Below are positions 19,130-60,144 of a stretch of 64,000 nt of DNA, piece by piece (the stretch's first letter is position 1; each line of letters starts with the position of its first letter). The stretch is taken from the NCBI GenBank assembly GCA_964036045.1, contig OZ038379.1:57846001-57910000 (forward strand), given 5' to 3'. Position numbers and translations under genes: made by a program. The notes beneath the pieces were generated by a model. It did not search any database and had not been told where the DNA came from. It was given only the letters and a program-made list of their open reading frames with translations. Source of the DNA: Eutreptiella sp. 'Long Island Sound 2002' (lineage: Eukaryota; Protista; Euglenida).

Positions 19130-19630
19130 AAACGTTAGCCACAACCACAACCACAACCACAACTGCAACCACGGAGACATCCCAAACTTTAAGTATAAGC
19201 GCAACCACAACTGTAACCGTAGATATAGCCATACCCACATCCACACCCAAAGTTACCACGACAACCACCAACCACGACCACAATCACAACCTCAACCTCA
19301 ACCACAACCCAATCCACAACCACAGCAACAACCACGACCACAACCCCGACCACATCCACACCAGCAAACACATTTGCAGTCACAACCCAAACCACAACCA
19401 CAAGCACAATCGAAGCCACAGTGAGAAGTGAAACCACAACTACAGCCTGAGCCGTAGCCTGTAACCACAACCACAACCAATGCCGCGACCACAACCACAA
19501 CCACAACCAAAATTAGAGCAAGAACCACAAGCATAACCACAACCACAATCACAACCACAACCACAACCATTGTTGTAGCTGCCACTACGGCTGGAGCTAA
19601 CAAAGATAAACGTCCGCACAACCAAACCCC
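19130..19630. repeat. Degenerate (AACCAC)n hexamer microsatellite
   Basis: Dozens of ACCACA/ACCACAACC units; accounts for the Thr-, His/Asn- and Val-rich ORFs in the track. Confidence 0.9.
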
Positions 19631-21206: not shown

Positions 21207-21222
21207 CACACACACACACACA
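21207..21222. repeat. (CA)8, left flank / probable TSD of the family-A LINE
   Basis: Ends immediately before G21223. Confidence 0.9.
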
Positions 21223-21281
21223 GGTGTTTTGTTTGGTGCCTGCCAGCTGGTGACACTGCATGCCCAACCGAAAGCCAAACA
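21223..21281 (+). ncRNA. HDV-like self-cleaving ribozyme at the LINE 5' end
   Basis: P1 GGTGTT(21223-28)/GACACT(21252-57) with G1.U wobble; P2 TGTTTGGT(21230-37)/GCCAAACA(21274-81); P3 GCC/GGT; L3 TGCCAGCT; P1.1 G21242-C21259 and C21243-G21258; J4/2 CGAAA with candidate catalytic C21269; P4 reduced. Confidence 0.75.
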
Positions 21282-21340
21282 GGCACGTACATCGGTAACC
21301 TCAACTACACGGGCGGCTCTTGGGCTGGTGAACCCCCTGC

Positions 21341-23169
21341 GTGACACGAACCCACACGTCACACAAAATATCCGCAATCACGCATGAAAATTTGGAAGCA
21401 TTGCAACGCCCGGAGCTCCTGGAAGCTCTGGCTGCTGCCCTTGCGCCACTGCTCAGTGGGCGGAGCTCACCGAAGCCGAAGCCAACGGCATCTGTCGCTA
21501 CTGCTACTCCAGCTGCAACTGCAAGGGAAGAGGGGCTCCTCGGAATTATCCGGGAACTCAGAGGCACTGTCAAAGATTTGCGCGCGGCGCTGCAAGCGGC
21601 AGGAGGTACGCTTACACCCTCGAAAGCACAGGCCAATGCGGCCAAGGATGAAACCCCCTCATACCGGGACGCGCTACAACGGCGAATGAAAACCCAAAGC
21701 AGGCATGTGGTGCAGGATGTCCCAGACCTGGGAGAACCACTGCAGCCCACGGCGACTGCGGTGCATGAGATTGAGGGCAAATACGGCTTCACTGCGGTCC
21801 AAGGGCGCCGCATCTACCAGGGAGAGCACAAGACCGCACTCAAATCGCTGCAACGGATAGGAGCAAACAAGCCTCTCCATGATTGGAAAGTCACTGAGGC
21901 CACAGTGAAGGCCTTCGAACACGTTTTGCTTGTGGGACAGCCGCTGGCGGAAGCGCACGCGATAGCAACGCAGGCTTTAATGAAATATGGCAAGATCCAG
22001 AGCGTCAGCGCACACGTGCTAGCGACGAACTGCAGGCAAGGAGTGGTCAATGTGCCAGGCATTCTGGCAGCGCTTGGCAGCTCACGGGAGTGCTTACATA
22101 TCAAGGATTTCATTCTCAGTATCAAGGTCGTTACCAAACGTATGTCTTGGGAAGTCAAGAGAGACCCGGGTGTGACTGTGATCCGGCCTGAGCATTCCAT
22201 TCTGCTTTGCTGGGAACGACCCAGGGACGGAGTCGAAGGAAAGGACACGGAGCCAGAGGTTCTACCCCAGGACAAAGCCGCAATTCGGATAGTGTGCTGC
22301 CTAGACCCTTCCGCGCTGCGTGCGGGACAGGACAGCACCAAAGTCAAGGCATCCCGCTGGGCTGAAAACACGTGTTGGGAGCTGACAGCCCCCCTACTCC
22401 AGCCGGCGCTCACCAGTCCCCCATGCATGCAAGTGGGCAAGAGGGGCAGCAAGCATGAAGTCACGGTGGTGCTACCAGCGCCCATGGCCAAGCAGGTGCT
22501 CTGCAGCAGTGGCAAAATCGTCGGCCTGGAATACAAGCTGTTTTTGAGCAAAACCATCGATGTCGATGACCTGAAGGCCAACATGTTCTGGGTCAAGCTC
22601 CCTCCATCTAACAAGCGTTCCATTTCAGAGCAGTGGCGTAGACTATGCAAGCAGCCTTGGTTTGCAGGCCTCATGGCGGGGGACGAGTATGGGGGGGGGC
22701 TGTCTCGCCCGAGACCAGGGAGGAAATCGCAGGACTGTTGGGCATACAACTCACCCCCCCCCCCTTGACACGAGTAAGGGTGAGAGGCTATGGTATTTCC
22801 ATGGGACTAGTATCAGGGTCGCAGTCTGCGGCCTAGCGGGAGGCTGACCGCGTTTTTGGCGCTAACGCTGTCAAAGTGCGGCGATGTCAACACCTGAAGC
22901 ACAGTGGGATGGTCAACCTTGTGTTTGATATGGATATTACAGGAGTTCCCCCAGATTTGGAAAGCTGCACTGCTCCGGCGAAGGACTCGCGGATGCTTGT
23001 CCGCAGGTGGCACCTCTGTCTGCGTAAATCCACTGGCCCCTCGTACACCCCAGTGGGGAAAAACACGACGCTCCCTGCGGTGCAGGGATGTGTCCTGCCC
23101 GATGATGAAGAAATGGAGGACTCACCTGCGAGAGCCCCCGCGGCAGAGGAGGATGAGAGCATTCTCTGA
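21341..23169 (+). pseudogene. LINE ORF1 (gag-like), frameshifted at a G-run near 22690 and with a TAG at 22834
   Basis: 475-codon open frame 21341-22768 continues in another frame (AVSPETREEIAGLLGIQLTPPPLTRVRVRGY...VNLVFDMD...DDEEMED) to 23169, directly upstream of the APE domain. Confidence 0.75.
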
Positions 23170-23200: not shown

Positions 23201-26200
23201 GTTACAGGTCCTCTGAAATTCATCCAAACAAACGTTACTTCTTTGCGCGTCCATCACGAGGACGTCTTCAGTTTTTAGGCAGATGTAATTGGGATGGAAG
23301 AGACACGGCTCACAGAGGCCGGACAGCGCTGCATGAAAGCCATTGCCGCAGACTGGGGCTGGGAATGCTACTGGGGGAAGCCCCTGGGCTCACCTGCGGG
23401 AGGCATTTGGGGGGCACCTCAAGGGGGGGTAGGTTTACTGTTCAAAAAAGGCTGGAATGTCCGGAAAGTGGAGCCGGATTCGGATGACCCCATCGCCTGC
23501 CAGCTCTGGCACTCTGGACGGTGGTTGCACACGCGAGCAGGGATCGGCTCGGGCCAGTGCGTACTGAATATATGCGTTGCATATGGCGTGTCGGGAAATG
23601 AGTCCCTCAATCGAGAATTCTGGGATCAGGTGATCTGTTACCTGAGCAGGCCGGGGAATGCTAGCTGCATGCTGCTGACTGATGCAAATTTCAATTTTGA
23701 CCTGTTGCACAAGATTCCATCAGCGCCACTGACTGCGCTGGCGGACGGATGGCTTGTAGATGCAGGCAGGACCCATGCAGTTTTACATGGCAAGCCATGT
23801 GTTTGTGGCTTCCCCAAGGACGGCAAGCCGGCTACCCGCATAGACGGTCTGCTAGTCACCCTAGCTCAGGCAGGGATGCTAACAGGGGTTACAGCTCTGC
23901 GCAAACACTCCCTTCCTGGGCATGTCCCGGTATGTTTTACTTTCTCGCTGGATGCGCCACTCCTAAAGGTCATCGAAATGAAGAAGCCGCCGCCCTTCTC
24001 CCCACCACCCAGGACAGAGGATGACACACAGAAAATTTGCAAACTCATGCTACACCCCCACCAGCCAGAATGGGAAGGACTGTTGCACCAGGGGGATGTG
24101 AACCCCATCTGGGCGAAGTGGACCTGGCTGGCTGAGGAAGTCGGCATGGGGCTCTCATGCACACACCTCACTGTTGACACCCCCAACCCAACGCTTCCGT
24201 TTGCACACAAAACGGCGCCTAGGGGCCGTGGTACAGAACACATGTTGAAAGAAACGTCGCTGGCTCCACGGGGCATAGGCCTCACAGGTGGGCCGCGCAC
24301 ACGACTCCTCTCTAAAATCACGGGGGCTCTGGGAGCACTTCGCACTGTCATCCAATGGCAACGAGCCCAGTTGGGCATCAAAGGCACGAGAGTGCCAGCG
24401 TCACCCAAGCGCAAGGCCAAACATGTGTTGAGACCAGGTGCCATGCCAAAACAGGTGGAACTCTCGTGGCAGGCCGCCTGCCGCCGCATGCGTAAAACAG
24501 GCCTGGCTTTCCGGGAGGACCTGCTGCTCCACGAGTTTGTCGCTATTGCCCCCGACCCCACCCTTGCTGTGGACCGCCCTGTGCCAGCGCTGGTCGACAC
24601 GATATCTGCATATGACGGGCTGTGCCTCCTGGGGAAGAAGTATGCGCGTCACGAGGAACGCACGTGAATTGAAAAGTGGAAGTCCAAAATGGATCAAGTG
24701 TGGCTAGACAAACCAAAGGAGGTGTACAAGTGGATTCAAAACGAATACCAACCCCCCCTGGTCATGCTCCTGGACCCGGAAACAGACCAGCCTACGTCCA
24801 ATATCCCGCGGATGGACGAAATATTAGATGAGTCGTGGGACCAAGTCATGCGAAAATACGCCGACATTCCAGAGCCAGATGTGTGTGCTTTTGCACAAAA
24901 GTATGATCAGTTCCGGATCAAGAATGCGTGCATGCAAGCGAACCCCATCACAGGAAAACGCCTTGCGAAGCGTCTCAGAAAGATGGGGGTCCACACAGCC
25001 ACTGGGCTGGATGGGTGGTGTGTGTCTGACCTGCTGTTGCTGCCTGTCTGCCTGCTGGATATGCTCGCGGAAATCCTGCACCTTGTCGAACAGACGGGCT
25101 GCTGGCCCAGTGTTTTGGCCAGAGGATATGTCTCATTAATACCAAAAGGGGAGGGTATGTTGCCCATGCAGCAACGACCTCTGTCTGTTTTGTCCCAAAT
25201 CTACAGGGTTTGGGCAGGAATTCGACTGGAAGAGTGTATGCTGTGGCAGGAACAATGGATCCACCCACATGCATATGGTTTTAGAAAGAAACGGGGGGCC
25301 ACAGACGCGGCCGCCTTTATTTCAATGCTTATTGAGCTTCACAAGCTCATGAAAATTGTTTTACATGGCTTCGGGTTGGACTATATAAAATGCTTTGATC
25401 TCATACCTCAGTCTATCGTACTACACATTGCCCTCACACAAGGAATGGACTTGGGGACACACAGAGCGCTCACTGGCATGTACCACACACTCACGAGGTG
25501 TTTCAAGATTATGGGCTGCTGCGCCAGCTTTTTCGGCGCCACGAACGGTATCTTTCAGGGCTGCCCGCTAAGTGTCATACGTATCAACCTGATGACCAGC
25601 GTATGGAAGCGTGTGCTGGATGCCCAGCAGCAAGGCATTAAAGTCACAGTGCAGCGGCTTTCCCCCGGGGACCAGCCAGCGCAGGCCCTGCATTACATTT
25701 TGACTGCCCTAGGGTATGCGGACGACACCTATGGGTTCGCTGCAGGGAACTCCACACTCACCCCACTGCTGGACTGCACTTCCACCTAGCTGGACGACAC
25801 AGGATAGGGTGTGAATGCCAAGAAGTCGGTCGGTTTTTCATCGGATGAACGACATCCAGTGCGAGCTGCACTGCAGGGGGTGCCTTTTCCCGTTTCGCCC
25901 GAGTTCCAATCGTTGGGCGTAGGTGTTCGCACCACTGATGCCAGCTGCTCAGGGCCGCTCATACTGAAACGCATCCCCAAGGCCTGTAGTATGCTCGACA
26001 GGGTACATGGTGCGCAGGGGAATTTCGAACGCCGGTGTGATGTCATCTCCAGGATGATAACGGCCACAGGACTGCATGCAGCGGAAATAGTGCCCCTGCG
26101 GCCTAAGGACCTGCTGCCCTTTGAAGCAAAGGTCATGAAGACCATATGGGGCCCATCCCGACCGCGCAGGGCTAAAGAAATTTTCTTTGCACTGCTTTGC

Positions 26201-28274
26201 AAGGGACACAGGATTGCGCCGACCCTGATGCTTAAATATCACCGTATCCTCTGGCTGGAGCAACTGTGCCGCACCAGGGGGGCGGGCCAAATCACCGCAC
26301 AGGCCATCTGGGAAACGGGCCATGCATACAGCGCACAAATGTGGGTGGGTGGCCACGCAAGGATGGTGGGGATGGACAGTACCCGGACGAAGCGACCCCC
26401 TCCTCTTTTATGGAGACAAAAACACAGTGAAGCACGAGGTGCATGAGCAACTCCGGTCACAAATGTTGGACAGCCTAATACAGCGGCGTCCCCAGATTTT
26501 TACGGGAGCTCACTACACCACGTGCCGGCGCCTGGTCCAGCCCAGCATAGCGACCTTTGCCACAGAGCTACAGCGTTCCATACTGCGGGGCATCCTTTCC
26601 GGAGCCACCTGGACAGCGCTCCGGGCTTATCAGTGTGGCATGAGAGCCACATACACGTGCCCCTATTCTGGCAACGCTCCGGAAAACGAGGAGCACATTT
26701 TGTGGCAATGCTCTGCGTGGAGCGCGGTGCGGGACACCCACCTACTAGGAATCAAGTCGGCGGCAGCGCAAGTCCCAGGCCTTCGCTTAATGGACCAGTG
26801 GTCCCCATGTTTACGACTTTGTGGACTTGCCCCAGAGCTGGACCCAGACAGCGTCAAGTCAGGGACAGCGCTAGCTTTCCTGACAGCTCTGCACAATATG
26901 TTAGTGACCGTTTTGCAGGCCCGCAAGTTACGAGACGCACAATCCCCCATGCTTATTAGGGGCCCGAGCCTCTCACAGCAGCTTCGGCAGTACCCGTACC
27001 ACCAGCTGGTGGGACCCCTCCCCAAACCGGACGACAAGGGGTTACTTCTTTTACGCACCCCCAAGAAAGTGGAACGGCAATGGGAAATGCCCTTTTTAGC
27101 AGACCTGCTGCGATGGCTGAGGGAACTACACTGGGCCCCGGAGCCTGGCACAGTAACGTTCCTGGAACTCGCGGTGGACTTTGAAGAGTTTGCGCAGCGC
27201 ACTCTCCCACACGCACCACAGGCGAAGTTCAAAGGCACAACTCTCTCACTACAGGAGAGAGGCCGGGTCTTGCGACTGGCGATGGCAAATGCGCAGCGCC
27301 TGGTCACCAAAGGCCACCTGCATCCGGCGCGTGTGGTCACGCGCTGCAGCTCTTTAGTCCCTCTAGGGGGGCCAGCACTTTGCGGCCTAAACAGCCGCCC
27401 CTATTTTACTTGCCGTAGTGCCATGAGCACACACATTCAGCAGTTAGCAGCATACTGTGAGCGCACGTGGGCCACCAAGGTTGGTCTCAACATAATATAC
27501 AAACTGCGTCCATACACACATAGACCACGGAGAAATGCGCAGGAAGTGGAGGAGCATCGACTGCAGCGTGCACTCCAGGGGAATCTGCAGTTAGAAATGG
27601 CTCCGTCCTCGGAACAGACTACTTTTGCCAAAGGGGGGGGGGGGCTGCCTTCCTTTGCAGCTGATTTTTTCCCTGTGATAGGGGATGGGAAGTTTGCACA
27701 GCGCCCCTATACCGGAACACGCAGGCGCACGAACACACACAGGGCGCCACAACCAGCGCCGCCGGCTGATTCGTCTCAGTGCGCCCAGCACTCGGCTACC
27801 GCGTGCACGACTTGCAAAAGACTTCGGCGCACAGCTGAAGCATGCTGTGCGCTATGACACCACGCAGAGGACCACATAGCCCGCAGGCCACAACTGCAGC
27901 TATGCCCACTGCATGGCCTGCCAGCATGCCCGAGGTGCACACTCAAGCAAAGGGGAGTGCGCCACTGCTGTCAGCGGGGAGACCATAAATTGTGCACCCC
28001 AATGCCTGTGCGCCGGAAGCGCCCACTTACACGGCCGCAACTGCCCAACAAACGACCATGTCCGCAAGGGCCTGCACGTATCTCCACGGGTGTGCTGAGG
28101 TCCCCACACCAACCCCCCACCCCTCCATCCCCCAAACGCAGGAGGCCGAAATCACCCCCCCCTCCGTCCCCGCCAGCCCTAGTTCCACGGGGGCTGGAGG
28201 AGACCGTGGCCGAGGATGTCGCACGCCCGCTTTTTGTGACGACGCACGGGAGAGCAACCACTCTGGATACCTAG
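23201..28274 (+). pseudogene. LINE ORF2: AP endonuclease, reverse transcriptase, zinc-finger region, tandem Cys/His motif
   Basis: APE motifs QTNVTSLR, MEETRLT, GGVGLL, LTDANF, TRIDG, PGHVPV. RT motifs TGLDGW, QRPLSVLS, AYGFRK, LDYIKCFD, GIFQGCPLS, GYADD. CPYSGNAPENEEHILWQC zinc-finger-like. In-frame stops at 23276, 24665, 25787, 25805 and 27855; frameshift near 26335. Confidence 0.95.
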
Positions 28275-28405
28275 CCGGCAAAATACAGAGGTTCTGATTC
28301 CGCAGAAGGGAGCGAAACAACGTCACAAAGAGGCCTCAGCAGACCTGAGCCAAATGAGACGTCCAGCCCTACGCTGCACAAGGATCCACCTCTAAAAGTA
28401 CAGAT

Positions 28406-28423
28406 CACACACACACACACACA
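28406..28423. repeat. (CA)9, right flank / probable TSD of the family-A LINE
   Basis: Follows ...AAAAGTACAGAT directly. Confidence 0.9.
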
Positions 28424-42410: not shown

Positions 42411-45400
42411 CATTATTGCTGTTTGGTACGGAGTACCTTGTGTCATTGGAGTAACTCTTTTCTCGGCAGCTGTGACTAATCTAACGTCTTTGGCTCGGTC
42501 ATTCGTCTGCAGCTGCTGCGGATTAGCTCTATTCAAACTTGTATGCAAGCGTTCATTCAACAGCATCTTTGGAAGCCGCCCAGACAGTGTCTTGTGGTGC
42601 CAGCACTCCCAAGGTGCTACCTGGAGCGCGTTCAACTTGCCCATGTTTTTCTCTCTTTCATGAAGGGCTACTGATTTTGGTCCGAGCACACGGAAATGGT
42701 GATCTCAGTGATACACGGTTGCTTTCACTGCCGTTCTTGGTTTTTCACATTGTGCTGGAACTTGTCCGTGTTTGATCGGATAGCACAAGGCGGCCCTGCC
42801 TCTCGTTCCCGACAATGGGTATCCAAACAGCTACTAAAAAGGCCCCCTAGTGTGGGTTCCTAGTGGGGACAAAGCCTAGGACGAGTAATTGGGCCGGGAT
42901 CCGGTGCGAGTAACATGTCCGAATTGCATAATTGTTAGTCCCATCGCCTTCGTGGTGCCCTGAGGCCGAATGAGTGCCACATCACAATACAGCCAGCAAT
43001 ACCCGCCATCCGGAGAACCGATGCTACACCCTAAACTTGAAAAACTAATTTGCGACTTGGAGGCTTCCCCGCGGCTGACTTTCACGAGCAAAGCCAGCAA
43101 TTCCTTTCCAAGCCATTAGCATGCGGAGCCTAAATGACATCTATGACGGCCCCTGAAACGCAGAGCTCCATGGGCCTCGCCAAGCTCATCTTGCCATTTG
43201 AAAAATTTGTGGTAGCCGGTGGCCCAGGCTTTGAAAACGAAGTGGGGCGCACCGTGTGGTTTGTTACCACGGCGATGCTGGAGTTTGAAAAAATCTATTT
43301 AGTTCATTTCCGAGTATCAAATGCCGCGCCTCTGTTAGACTCGTGTCTCGCCTACCTTGCCCTGTTGCCTGTTAATTGCCACACCCTCCAATGTGGGGAT
43401 CACACGATCAGCCGAGGAAATGGTGACAAGCGTGAAGTGTTTGTGTCTGAGATTACGAAGAGTTCTATGCAAAGCAAGTCCACCCCCATGTATCAGGTGC
43501 TCACCCTGGGAGCCCCGGATTAGGACCCGGGGAAGTTTATGTTGTGTTCTCCAGCATTAGACATGACCATATTTGTCAGTCAAGCACATGTGTCTTGGGT
43601 TGATGAGTTGATGAGATTCCTATCCGTCCCAGGTGATTCGGATCCGGGTCTCATCCCGCGCATTACCCGCCAAAAATCCGTCTCATTGAGCCGGCAACAC
43701 TTTTTGAAAGTATTGGAGACGTTCGGATTGCAGGCATACTTCTGAATAGCCGAGGCTGCGTGAGAATGCTTTCATTGCCCGGATTCTAGACAGTACAAGT
43801 TCGACTTGTACGTTCCGAAAGCGCGCCCAGTCGAAAGGGAGCCGCTTTTTTTGGGTGCCACGTTTTCAGTTGTGATGTCAGTCTCCCGATTTTCGTAGGA
43901 GCCACGTGGCGACCCCCTCCGTTTCGTGTTTTTTTTTTACCTGGGAGCCACAAAGGTACGGTCCGGTTTGTCTGAGCAGGTGTTGCTGGGAAAAGATCCG
44001 CCGGTGAACGACTTGAGGCAAAATTTGGTCTCAGAAAGGTTGATGACAAATTTGGAGCATGAGCGTCCACTGGGTCCGTCAACGAATTGACAGGAGAACC
44101 TGGAGATAAGTCGTGTGTACTCACGGATGTTTGGTTTTGGCGGTCGCTACAACATGTCTAGTCCATTCTTACTTGTGCGTTGTTGCAAGAGGAGTCAATG
44201 AATGTGTCCCTTCATCCTTTGACATGTTTTGTTGCTGCGCTGCGACTCGAAGCTGGAGACTCAACTCTCCAGAAGCACGAACTTGCTAGGAAGCATCATG
44301 GATGGACCTCGCAGTGAGCAGATAGGAGCATTGAGTCTGTCCGAGTATTGCTCCATTAAGGAGAACATTTTGAGGCAAACGGGTAACAGACCATCACCTA
44401 GCAGGTGGTATGTTGAGGCCGCTTTCTCAAGCAAGCCTCCTAGGCTAACCCCCCATCAGTCCAAATGCTCGTCTGTGGAAATCTCTCGCACTCAAAAGCG
44501 GGAAGGCCTGATTCCCTTGGGCACGGCTATTCCACTGCCCCCCCCCCCTTCCATTCTCATTCCTGTGCCCGTCTATCCCTATTTTGTTGGTTGAATGGAA
44601 CAAACGGCTTCCAAAGAGGAAGAGGCAGAATATAGGGCAGAGACCAAATGATTGATGGCTGCCACACATGACTCATCGGGCCCTATTTCCCCTCCTCGAT
44701 AAGGGATGGGCATAGGGCCGTTCCGCTCCATGACCTAGAATTGAGATGGTCTTCTGTGTAAACCCTCGGCTGCCGAGCGTTCTAGGTGTGCTCATGCTCT
44801 CCTAGGAAAATACATGTCACAACACAATGTGTCTTTAGCCACGACCCAAGAACCTGATTTCAACGATATGCCCCCGAAGTGCGGGGTTCCGCTGGTTGAT
44901 TGTGCAGTGTCATCATACCTCTTCAAACGGCTGTGCGCCCGTCAAGAGATCTAGATGGTAGGCCGTCGTCACTTCTTGCAACTGGTTGCCTGGAATGCTC
45001 ATGTTTGACCGCCGAATGTGCCATGTCTCGACAGTGCTTCAGTATTTTTTAATTCCGGTGGAAATGGTTGTTTCTTGCATCTTCAGTTTCTTCATACGAG
45101 CCATAGGACATCTAAGGTTGACAATGGCCCATTGAACAAGTCCGCTCTCTGCACTTGGGGATGTTTGGTCACTGCATCGCTTTTGAGTTCTCAATGCCGA
45201 TGGTGTTGGGTGTTTCTTGCTCCCGCCATCCCTTGCTGCCTGCCATGGGGTACCGATGGTGCGCAGCCGCCTACTTACAAGATTCACAATCTTCATTTGG
45301 AGAATTTCGGATTCACATTTGACTCTGAAAATTTTGGCTCATGGGGGATGAGTAGTCTTTTGTCACGTCATTCAATTCTTGCGAGTCACGGGATAAAGTT

Positions 45401-56687: not shown

Positions 56688-57920
56688 AGAGGTTGTTAGA
56701 TCAAGCGCAGGCGCGAGCGTCGTACACCCCCCTTTTTTGGGGTCGTTCGCGTAGCATACCCCAACATATGGTTTCTGACGTCTATCCCCTTGTAAAATCA
56801 TCATTTTAGGATAAAAAATGATCCCCCAATGATTTTTTGGATTTTGACTCCCGTACCCCCCCCCCCCACCGCACCTGGGTACCTCTTTTTTAGGGGGCGG
56901 GGGTGGGGTAGGGGAGGTCAAAACTTCTTTGCATATTGTGGTCGCTGCGTGTGTATTTGGGCCTGGGTCCTGGAGAACTTTTTTCTTGTATATGGACCCC
57001 TTAACCCATGGCGGGGGTCCCGGATCCCAACTCTAGGTAGCCCCAGTCCCCCCCCCCCCCCATATGGCCCCTTGGCAGTGAGGACTGAGCCGTTTTCGCT
57101 GTATAGGCTGTTTAGAGGCACGTGAAAGTTTTTTGAATTTCGAGTTTGCATGAATACCTTCCGTCCCTCCTAGGACGGGTTTGGGTGATCATGTGGTGAC
57201 AATACAGGTACTTGAGCACCCATGGGAACCCACATAGTGGCCACTAGGCCCATCTAGCCCGTGCCATGGGCCCCCCAAAAGCTTCAAAGTCAGCTCGCAG
57301 AGGTTGTTAGATCAAAGCCAGGCAGGCGTATGTAGGGAAAAATGCCACATACCCCCCCATTTTGGGACTTTTTGGGCCTATTCGCGTAGCCTACCCCGAG
57401 GGGTTGGATTCTTAGTTTGGCCCCTAGTAAAATCATTATTTTGTCCAATAAACGCATCCCCCAACGAGTTTTCAGTCCGGACCCCCCCCCCCGACCCCCC
57501 CCCCCACTTGAAACCCACTTTTTTTTGAAGTTTTGAGAGAGGTGGGGGGGTGGAGGGGGTGCGGGGGTCAGAAATCGAACCCCCCCTTTTTTGGGTCGAA
57601 AATCATGAATCTTTTGGTTTTTTTTTTCGATTTTGAGCCGAAAAATTGTTTCCGGGTCCCGACTCCATGGGGTTTGTATGGGGCGGAGTGGGACGAGCAC
57701 TGCTGCAGCTTATGCACTTTTTAGCCATTTTTGGTATGTTGGCGGTTTTGGCGACCTAGGTGACCCCCTGGTACGCACTGTGAGGGGTGTGAGTGGGGAT
57801 GTTGTGACAGTTTTTGCCTACTAGCATACGAAAGGACGTTCTTTGCAGTCCGTAGCCTTGCCGAGGGCCAGTCAATGCCGGTGCCAAAGACGCGAAATGA
57901 TTGTTTCCACCAATAATGGC
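56688..57920. repeat. Dispersed non-coding repeat, copies 2 and 3
   Basis: Diverged copies of 53727-54620. Confidence 0.75.
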
Positions 57921-57970
57921 CTAGTGAATGGGCCAGCTCACAACCTGATCATGCAGCTTTTCGCCTCGGA

Positions 57971-58650
57971 CAGCTCAAAAATCGAAGTTTTCGAAACCTG
58001 TTTTTGTGACTTTCTGACCACATGATATGAGCATCCAAGCTATGTAAAGCATTTTTTAGGCCGTATTTACGTGTTTTTCACCCTATTTGGGTATTAGGTC
58101 CGGGGGGGGGGGGTCTCCCAAGGGTTTGGTACACAACCTGCTTATGCAATTTTTCACCGTGGGCAGCTCAAAAATCGAAGTTTCCGGAAGTTGTTTTTTT
58201 GATATTGCGATCCCTTAAAATGACCATCCAAGCTATGTAAAGCATGTTTTAGGCCGTATTTACATGTTTTTAACCCTATTTAGGGATTAGGTCTGGGCGG
58301 TGGGGGTCTCCCAAGGGATTGGTACAAAACCGGATTATGCAATTTTTCACCCGGGGCAGCTCAAAAATGAATTTTTCGAAAGTGTTTTTTTTATATCGTG
58401 ATCACCTAAAATGACCATCCAAGGTATGTAAAGCATGTTGTAGGCTGCATTTACCTGTTTTTCACCCATTTCGGGTTTTAGGTCCGGGGGGGGGGGGGAG
58501 GGGGGGCTCCCAAGGGATTGGTACAAAACTTGCAAATGCATTTTTTCACCTTGGACGGCTCAAAAGCCGAAGTTTTCGAAACTTATTTTTTCGATACCGT
58601 GATCACTTAAAATGACCATCCAGGCTATGTAAAGCATAAATTAACCCGTA
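57971..58650. repeat. ~195-bp tandem repeat, ~3.5 copies
   Basis: CAGCTCAAAAATCGAAG-like anchor at 57971, 58164, 58357 and 58556 (periods 193, 193, 199); shared CATCCAAGCTATGTAAAGCAT. Confidence 0.9.
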
Positions 58651-59264
58651 TTTATGTAGTTTTTAGTTGGACTTGTGGGGCCAAGTGAGGGACAACAACC
58701 CTACCCGCCAAGCCCCCCCTCCCCAACCCCGGCCCCCTTCGACATGGATGGAGGTGGTGGTGCACGCCCTCCTCCCCACGGTCACCGACGTCTGGTGGGC
58801 CACCCTGACGGAGCCGGGGGAGATCCATGCCACGGCCCGGTGGCCCGACGTCCTCCGCCGCGTCGACCCGGCGCTTCACCAAGACCTCCTGCACGAGGTC
58901 ACCCAGGAAGCTCGCCGCGTCGCCGGGGGATGGGAGCAAGGTCACCCCCTGCGCATGTGCCCCCCCCCCCCCATGCCGCCTGCCGCCGGCGGCCGCCGCC
59001 TCACCCTACGCCGCCCCCTCCACCGCCCGGCGCGCCCGCCCTGGGCTGGTGACCGTCCCCGACCGCTTGACCACGGTGCAGCAGGCCCGGGAGCAGAGAT
59101 GAACTTGCAGGCATGCTTTGCTGCCCCTCTGGCCCCTTACTTCGCACCCACTGACCACTCGTGGTTGAGTACGTGTGTGGGTGGGTACTCCCCCCCTCCC
59201 CCCCCCCCGCTGGGGCCACCGGGGCTCCGCTCTCCCCCCCGTCCCGGTGGGGTGCCGCCGTGTA

Positions 59265-60144
59265 CCCTTCGTGAGCGGGGGTTAAGTGGCCGTTTGAATG
59301 GAGCGTGAATTTCATGTGAATTTGACCTTTTTTCGTGTTTTTTCGGGAAAACACTACATTTTGGCTTCAACATGACGTATTAGATGTGGCAAACCGCAAG
59401 CCCCATTTTCAGTCACCATGATTCAGTGAAAGTCCCACCCCAATCGGACCCATGAGGCCCAAATGGCGCCCAAAAGAAATTCCGACAACATGTTACGCTA
59501 CCTTTGGGCCTGAATTTGCGAAGTTCGTACGAATTTCGTGCGAAATTCGTACGAAATTCGTGCGAATTCGGCAGATACGTATGAAATTTGTGCAAATGTG
59601 GCGCGCACTGCCTGCGGATTTCACCAGAATCTCCGGATTCGTACGAAATTCGTGCGAATTTTGTACGAATTTGGTACGAATTTCCTAAAATTCCAAATTT
59701 TAGCAAAAACTCACCCGAATTCACGTGAAATTCACGCATGCCTGAATTTGGTAAATTCGTGTTGCGTTCACGGTTATTGAGCCGAACATTCGCAAGCTAC
59801 CAACAAGGTAAAACATCAAATTTCAAGACATTTTTAGCGACAATGTTTTGGCGAAGAGGGCACAAGAAACGCAAACAATTGCGCCAAGTTACGAGCAAAA
59901 CAAAGCAACAATTTGTTAAATTCACGCTACCGTGAATCTCCCATTCACGGTTATTGAGCCGAACATTCGCAAGCTACCAACAAGGTAAAACATCAAATTT
60001 CAAGACATTTTTAGCGACAATGTTTTGGCGAAGAGGGCACAAGAAACGCAAACGATTGCGCCAAGTTACGAGCAAAACAAAGCAACAATTTGTTAAATTC
60101 ACGCTACCGTGAATCTCCCATTCAAACGGCCGCTTCACGAAGGG
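59265..60144. mobile_element. 880-bp non-autonomous TIR DNA transposon (MITE-like) with TA target duplication
   Basis: TA|CCCTTCGTGA...GCCGTTTGAATGG at left and CCATTCAAACGGC...TCACGAAGGG|TA at right; removal restores the host reading frame. Confidence 0.85.
59767..60120. repeat. 177-bp tandem duplication inside the TIR element
   Basis: TTCACGGTTATTGAGCC...GAATCTCCCA at 59767 and 59944; one mismatch noticed. Confidence 0.95.

Follow-up and report, generated by a model that had tools for sequence, protein, structure and literature searches.

In the 64-kb window analysed here (the whole stretch of Eutreptiella DNA, 64,000 nucleotides), positions 21223-21281/82 very probably encode a minimal, P4-less HDV-like self-cleaving ribozyme of 60 nt, with which the RNA of an APE-type LINE inserting into (CA)n repeats would begin. 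We give this reading a probability of about 0.78. The role of the ribozyme is very probably to trim the LINE RNA to its exact 5' end. All the pairings of the HDV fold are present in the letters of this stretch, the fold starts at the first base of the element, it is selectively conserved among copies of the LINE, and helix covariation is found when distant relatives are compared. The parts of the fold and of the LINE described below lie on the forward (+) strand of the window.

We parsed the candidate by direct reading, with a script, and with a generic descriptor that specified a P1 of 6-7 bp starting with G, a P2 of 5-9 bp, a P3 of 3 bp, an L3 of 7-8 nt whose first base is U, a P1.1 of 2 Watson-Crick bp, a linker of 3-60 nt and a J4/2 of the form C-N-R-A. 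Direct reading and the script parse recovered all the pairings that a first-pass annotation of the window had listed: a 6-bp P1 opening with G.U, an 8-bp P2 and a P3 of GCC/GGU. The 5' strand of P1 is GGUGUU (21223-21228; generic descriptor parse and P1 covariation) and its 3' strand GACACU (21252-21257; script parse and covariation), giving the pairs G.U, G-C, U-A, G-C, U-A and U.G, with G.U wobbles at both ends. In HDV-like ribozymes the cut falls immediately before the opening base of P1, which is a G usually engaged in a G.U pair, and no particular sequence is required upstream. The first P1 pair here is G21223.U21257, which agrees with such a cut site at the level of sequence, and cleavage is predicted to yield an RNA that begins with G21223. 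J1/2 is the single base U21229, followed by the 5' strand of P2 at 21230-21237 (21229-21237 together; descriptor parse). This strand forms 8 bp with 21274-21281, and a U21229-G21282 pair would extend the helix to 9 bp; the 3' strand of P2, likewise from the descriptor parse, is GCCAAACA, to which G21282 is added for the optional ninth pair (21274-21282).

The remaining parts are equally compact. P3 is formed by GCC (21238-21240) and GGU (21249-21251), both placed by the script parse and paired as G.U, C-G and C-G, and the 8-nt L3 between them reads UGCCAGCU (21241-21248). Bases 2-3 of L3 take part in P1.1, a helix of 2 bp (G21242-C21259 and C21243-G21258) whose 3' strand is the J1/4 dinucleotide GC (21258-21259; script parse). 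A 9-nt linker replaces P4 (21260-21268); copy comparison shows that it reads AUGCCCAAC in the window copy, which has a private G at 21262, and AUACCCAAC in the other copies and in a diverged relative (L130). Neither version pairs internally, which makes the fold P4-less. J4/2 is CGAAA (21269-21273; descriptor parse), and C21269 followed by GAAA fits the C-N-R-A pattern for a catalytic cytosine, the function predicted for C21269. The helix order P1-P2-P3-L3-P3'-P1'-J1/4-linker-J4/2-P2', with P1.1 joining L3 to J1/4, is that of a nested double pseudoknot. The 8-nt L3, the P1.1 with a G-C in place of a C-G, and J4/2 CGAAA all read as the first-pass annotation had described them. In all four lineages (4/4), L3 opens with U and has G as its sixth base, a pair of bases that could form the metal-binding reverse wobble. 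We take these two bases to correspond to U20.G25 of genomic HDV, and the C-N-A-A of J4/2 to C75/A77/A78.

The element headed by this fold is a non-LTR retrotransposon that spans 21223 to ~28405, roughly 7.2 kb. Its ORF1 (21341-22768) belongs to no Pfam family, and the start codon of the family reads ATA in the window copy (21368-21370); contigs of other copies show A>G at 21370, and hence an ATG start. ORF2 is found in pieces: an APE-like endonuclease region recognized through language-model look-alikes (23294-24667), a reverse transcriptase identified by Pfam as RVT_1 (24689-25789), and C-terminal pieces at 25811-26446 and 26322-27857 (25811-27857 overall). The solved chains nearest to the reverse transcriptase are those of LINE-1 ORF2p and R2. 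The N-terminus of ORF2 resembles Exo_endo_phos endonucleases, with a look-alike score of 0.94; Pfam did not recognize the endonuclease region in the window copy, and its single-sequence AlphaFold model has a pLDDT of 36. Relatives of the reverse transcriptase commonly carry PF03372 together with RVT_1. The element, previously annotated as a probable LINE, is upheld as such by RVT_1, by LINE-1 ORF2p and R2 as closest structures, by the Exo_endo_phos-like N-terminus and by PF03372 in its relatives, and its assignment to the APE-type LINEs is supported by the same sequence comparisons. The nearest named relatives of the reverse transcriptase all come from Diplonema papillatum, a euglenozoan (P0112, P0117 and P0122; 37-41% identity), and there was no trypanosomatid protein among the 75 reverse transcriptase relatives. 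The three Diplonema proteins are automatically labelled 'R2', a label that looks wrong because relatives in this group carry APE-type (PF03372) endonucleases.

The last bases of the element are AAAAGUACAGAU, with (CA)9 directly after them; the 3' end AAAAGTACAGAU and this (CA)9 occupy 28394-28423. The repeat after the 3' end places the element inside a CA microsatellite, the upstream part of which is a (CA)8 target stretch (21207-21222) that lies directly upstream of the predicted cut between A21222 and G21223. The window copy is dead as a gene, since it has lost the start of ORF1 (ATA) and its ORF2 is split over several frames. Non-functional as this copy is, its ribozyme fold is intact. An approximate Euglena spliced-leader sequence, used as a query, found nothing in the window.

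To examine other copies of the LINE we used ORF1 homologues, which led to six loci in the same assembly (L001-L006). L001 is truncated at its 5' end, and no copy of the 62-nt block that holds the fold was found in L006. The other four (L002-L005) are full-length, and each starts with GGUGUUUUGUUUGG directly after (CA)n. In every full-length copy ...CACACA precedes the first G, and the equivalent G occupies this same place in three diverged relatives described below (L131, L130 and L127), so that with the window copy 8/8 sequences agree with the claim that the predicted cut 5' of the first G, G21223 in the window, falls at the exact end of the CA repeat. The 62-nt block is 97-98% identical to that of the window in L002-L005; for the next 150 nt the values are 88, 71, 70 and 57%, and among homologues the identity of ORF1 drops to 56% at the amino acid level. 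Some of the subfamilies that keep the block, for example that of L005, have intact long ORFs, and 97-98% identity across such subfamilies points to selection on the block. The expectation that full-length copies would keep the pairings thus held for L002-L005, but only in part for the diverged L130 and L131, in which P2 is poor.

The sequencing runs in which the LINE family occurs, estuary metatranscriptomes and the runs of two organisms among them, were used as assembled contigs. In DNA-like runs the contig word depth over 21255-21285 exceeds that of the 5' UTR behind it ~10-fold, and contigs of two such runs join 21284 directly to 21413. This junction indicates a variant subfamily that lacks, or has replaced, the 128 nt after the ribozyme, and together with the elevated depth it suggests that the block is a conserved module which can be separated from the sequence after it. 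The locus L004 shows how copies of the LINE can adjoin: at 2794-2850, one copy terminates with AAAAGTACAGAT, and only 38 nt of (CA)n separate this 3' end from the first base of the next copy, a head-to-tail LINE tandem within one microsatellite. Such an arrangement makes read-through multimer RNAs that need cutting plausible.

Since the block is nearly invariant, there is no covariation inside the close family (the window copy and its near-identical copies). An ORF1 profile search over 1.8 billion representatives provided more distant sequences, from which five diverged relatives were fetched (L127-L131). The most informative of these is L127, an ORF1 relative from a different assembly (E = 5e-44), whose HDV fold is complete and begins immediately behind its (CA)n. 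Its P1 is GAUCUU/GAGAUU, so that pair 2, G-C in the window, is A-U here, and pair 4, also G-C in the window, is C-G. Its P2 has 7 bp with letters unrelated to those of the window, its P3 is ACC/GGU, its L3 UUCUCGU and its J4/2 CAAA. At the position of P4 it carries a 110-nt segment that folds as one long hairpin (z = -4.0). The chance of an L127-type match at one given position is 4e-5 under the relaxed descriptor, and ~1e-6 when P2 has at least 7 bp. Within the P4 domain of L127 (320-415) there is also an internal direct duplication of ~35 nt, in which UUUUUUUGUAUUCGUUGGU...GAUAAC occurs twice.

Two further relatives retain parts of the fold. L131, from the same assembly as the window, starts likewise after (CA)n and keeps P1, P3, P1.1 and CGAAA; pair 6 of its P1 has become U-A, its P2 is down to ~4 bp, and the precise place of P4 is taken by a hairpin of 4 bp, CUCC-CCCC-GGAG. 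In the P1 of L130, pair 5 is C-G in place of U-A, pair 1 is G-C in place of G.U, and pair 6 is lost; one of its P3 pairs is broken, 5/8 P2 pairs are left, and J4/2 reads CGAUA. L130 and L131 may both be decayed copies. The linker AUACCCAAC is letter-identical in L130 (913-921) despite the changed stems. In the window, the linker (21260-21268) can pair with the 5' strand of P2, and does so in the minimum free energy (MFE) fold; it may be a switch or a tertiary element. For the last two relatives, L128 and L129, neither (CA)n nor an HDV fold was found, and the 5' end of L128 is probably missing, because its sequence starts only 101 nt before the ATG. These two, which represent another branch of ORF1 relatives, have a hairpin in the 5' UTR (20-45 in L128, 538-560 in L129) that reads GUUCA-CGUCGU-UGAAC in L129 and has UGGAC as its closing strand in L128, an A-to-G change that preserves the pairing.

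Covariation across family copies, which had been proposed as a check of the fold, is found in P1 once the relatives are included (3/6 pairs) and not within the close family. On an alignment of the 5' half, 94% of the P1 cells are paired and 3/6 pairs have changed on both sides, the changes being drawn from two single sequences, L127 and L130; none of 500 shuffles (0/500) reached the observed level, and controls in which the helix was slid gave 0-1 such pairs. P2, for which there are few independent sequences, has been rebuilt with unrelated letters in L127 and is poor in L130 and L131. J4/2 conforms to C-N-A-A in 3/4 lineages, with CGAAA, CAAA and CCGA/CGAAA in the relatives that keep it and CGAUA in L130.

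The strict conservation of the linker and J4/2, GCAUACCCAACCGA, which are kept letter for letter in L130, would also suit a protein or DNA signal, and raises the alternative that the 62-nt block is mainly an internal promoter acting at the DNA level, or a protein-binding 5' element, in which the HDV-like pairing has no catalytic role. The opening bases of LINEs often contain an internal promoter. L1Tc combines promoter and ribozyme in one stretch of 77 nt (PMC3383444, PMC3185411). Also in line with this alternative, no cleaved RNA end was seen among the assembled contigs of RNA libraries, which start at 21246 and 21294 instead of 21223, have a depth of ~2.7 and may be DNA carry-over. However, a DNA motif leaves the compensated changes in P1 unexplained, as it does the rebuilding of P1, P2 and P3 in L127 with different letters at the same place and the insertion of a hairpin exactly at the P4 site in relatives. 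Promoter and ribozyme roles are compatible with each other. We consider it unlikely that the block is a promoter or binding element instead of a ribozyme.

It is likewise improbable, in our judgement, that the fold has true ribozyme ancestry and is inactive, either for want of P4 or in the window copy, with the RNA adopting a nested hairpin and its 5' end being set in some other way. Plain MFE folding of the block, which cannot model pseudoknots, is unremarkable (z = 0.17). It predicts a competing nested hairpin of -18.9 kcal/mol, in which the 5' strand pairs with the linker and J4/2, and this beats either nested half of the HDV fold (-6.7 and -10.1 kcal/mol). Activity would need co-transcriptional folding and tertiary contacts, as it does elsewhere in the class. 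A P1 of only 6 bp with two G.U pairs, a G.U in P3, the private G at 21262 in the linker and the state of the window copy as a gene, with its ATA start and fragmented ORF2, would fit inactivity as well. On the other side, the 97-98% identity of the block across subfamilies with intact long ORFs, such as that of L005, implies selection, P4-less HDV-like ribozymes are a described class (PMC10879173), and, with nt 1-35 emerging before the rest, co-transcriptional folding would favour P1 and P3.

There remains chance. The generic descriptor matched only once on either strand of the 64-kb window, at 21223, which is exactly the first base of the mobile element. The number of sites expected by chance is on average 0.03 per window (160 first-order Markov simulations), or 0.006 when P2 is required to have at least 7 bp, figures that are somewhat generous because the descriptor was drawn up with the candidate already known. 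Although G+U and C+A, which pair easily, abound in the flank and in P1/P2, and although relaxed descriptors match GT repeats by chance, a fortuitous pairing in a GU/CA-rich 5' end is scarcely credible against 0.03 sites expected and one observed at the very first base of the element, the conservation of the block, the covariation of P1 and the fold of L127. Three matches to relaxed descriptors elsewhere in the window (at 2428, at 43825 and, on the minus strand, at 19170) were rejected, their number being close to that expected by chance and their P3 weak.

Database searches with the ribozyme gave no named family. Neither the window copy nor L127 or L131 matched the HDV-type families of Rfam that were queried (HDV ribozyme, CPEB3 and the drz families), whether at the gathering score or at E up to 10; since these models are narrow and leave pseudoknots unscored, the result concerns the named families and not the fold class. 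Rfam models and plain MFE folding are both poorly suited to a pseudoknotted class of variable sequence. A metagenome scan in which P3, L3 and J4/2 were fixed and P1 and P2 free (at least 120 stretches) led to fetched loci without the fold, with one chance match in P1, and a scan of viral contigs with the conserved linker block gave two matches, both due to chance. Nothing was found in viral contigs with the ORF1 profile.

Taken as an HDV-like ribozyme, the block suggests the following sequence of events. The LINE would be transcribed inside a longer RNA, started either at an upstream promoter or in the upstream copy of a head-to-tail array. As nt 1-35 emerge, P1 and P3 would form, and P2, P1.1 and J4/2 would then complete the nested double pseudoknot. 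With C21269 acting as general acid/base, the RNA would cut itself between A21222 and G21223. HDV-like ribozymes self-cleave in a reaction that depends on divalent ions and leaves a 5'-OH and a 2',3'-cyclic phosphate. The product would thus be a unit-length LINE RNA with a 5'-OH at its exact first base, freed of sequence from the flank or from the upstream copy, and this RNA could serve as the template for target-primed reverse transcription into another CA repeat. We infer both the cleavage at 21223 and the co-transcription of that site from the sequence. A further role in translation initiation or as an internal promoter is possible, by analogy with what has been proposed for R2 and L1Tc.

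The candidate shares with genomic HDV a G.U at the base of P1, a GC-rich P3 of 3 bp, a P1.1 of 2 bp and a J4/2 of CGAA. The L3 of genomic HDV likewise has 8 nt, starts with U and ends with GCU. The two differ in the length of P1 (7 bp in genomic HDV versus 6 bp in the window), in one P1.1 pair that is flipped (G-C for C-G), in the absence of P4 from the window fold, and in biological context, that of genomic HDV being different from the window LINE. As to the insertion site, Kojima and Fujiwara reportedly described microsatellite-specific LINEs in 2004: Mino in (AC)n, Waldo in (ACAY)n and Kibi in (TC)n. All three occur in animals and belong to the R1 and Tx1 clades. Like the window LINE, they insert into repeats and have the repeat on both flanks; we know of no 5' HDV-like ribozyme in any of the three.

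HDV-like ribozymes have been described at the 5' ends of several non-LTR elements, namely R2, RTE, baggins and the L1Tc/ingi clade (PMC3185411, PMC4035085, PMC3774820, PMC6765202). The literature thus agrees with the statement in the first-pass annotation that they occur at the 5' ends of R2 and L1Tc/ingi (PMC3185411, PMC3774820), and full-text literature searches found no HDV-like ribozyme in euglenids, as had also been claimed. The closest parallel is L1TcRz/Pr77 of the Trypanosoma cruzi L1Tc and of ingi, which, as in the window, is an HDV-like fold in the first bases of a euglenozoan APE-type LINE (PMC3185411, PMC3383444, PMC4035085). L1TcRz cuts at position +1 of the element and is thought to release it from read-through transcripts, whereas in the window the cut site is predicted. 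Its 77 nt, a conserved hallmark sequence, include a P4 and a P1.1 of 1-2 bp and also act as an internal promoter; the window candidate has ~60 nt, no P4 and a P1.1 of 2 bp. Moreover, L1Tc shows only a relative site preference, in contrast to the window LINE, which targets (CA)n.

The ribozyme of R2 is also HDV-like, heads a site-specific non-LTR element and frees the element RNA from its co-transcript at or near the 5' junction (PMC3774820, PMC6765202). In R2, however, the endonuclease is restriction-like, there is one ORF, the target is 28S rDNA and the P4 or extended domain is large (PMC3774820, PMC6765202), as opposed to the APE-like endonuclease, two ORFs, microsatellite target and missing P4 of the window LINE. 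Minimal HDV-like ribozymes without P4 are known from metagenomes and phages (PMC10879173). Like the window candidate, the metagenomic P4-less ribozymes and the theta ribozymes of gut phages have the double-pseudoknot core, a short linker for P4 and a similar size, but they lie next to tRNAs or have no assigned function, while that of the window heads a eukaryotic LINE (PMC10879173). Some relatives of the window LINE, unlike this metagenome and phage set, carry a P4 of 4 bp or of 110 nt. The earlier description of P4 as unusually minimal can therefore be made more precise: there is no P4 helix at all, its place being taken by the 9-nt linker, and such an arrangement has precedents in metagenomes and phages (PMC10879173).

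As both 5' HDV-like ribozymes of non-LTR elements and P4-less forms had already been described, our results would extend a known mechanism to a new host group, and open no new kind of mechanism. What sets this case apart is the host group, a LINE specific for CA repeats, the lack of P4, and the existence of relatives whose P4 is short or long. Processing of LINE RNA at its 5' end by HDV-like ribozymes would thereby reach free-living euglenozoans and a microsatellite-specific element. With ~60 nt and no P4, the candidate is a compact object in which to study the minimal needs of what would be the smallest natural eukaryotic delta ribozyme, and its relatives with short and long P4 offer a natural comparison set for the contribution of that helix. 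In practical terms, the motif allows full-length copies of this abundant LINE family to be annotated to their exact 5' end. More speculatively, and with a modest chance of being right, a single LINE lineage might hold a natural series of HDV-like ribozymes, from no P4 in the window through 4 bp in L131 to 110 nt in L127, with P4-less forms at work in eukaryotic retrotransposons; the 5' HDV-like ribozyme could also be a trait that euglenozoan APE-type LINEs have shared from early on, common to those of euglenids and to L1Tc/ingi, and not a repeated invention.

Other repeats were observed in the window. A long, imperfect array of ACCACA-type hexamers, seen as 14 overlapping copies of a 60-nt repeat, extends over 19138-19589, ~1.6 kb upstream of the LINE. 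Far downstream of the element, four tandem copies of a ~193-nt repeat, 61-83% identical to one another, occupy 57909-58663, and a 177-nt repeat is present at 59767-60120 as two tandem copies that are 99% identical.
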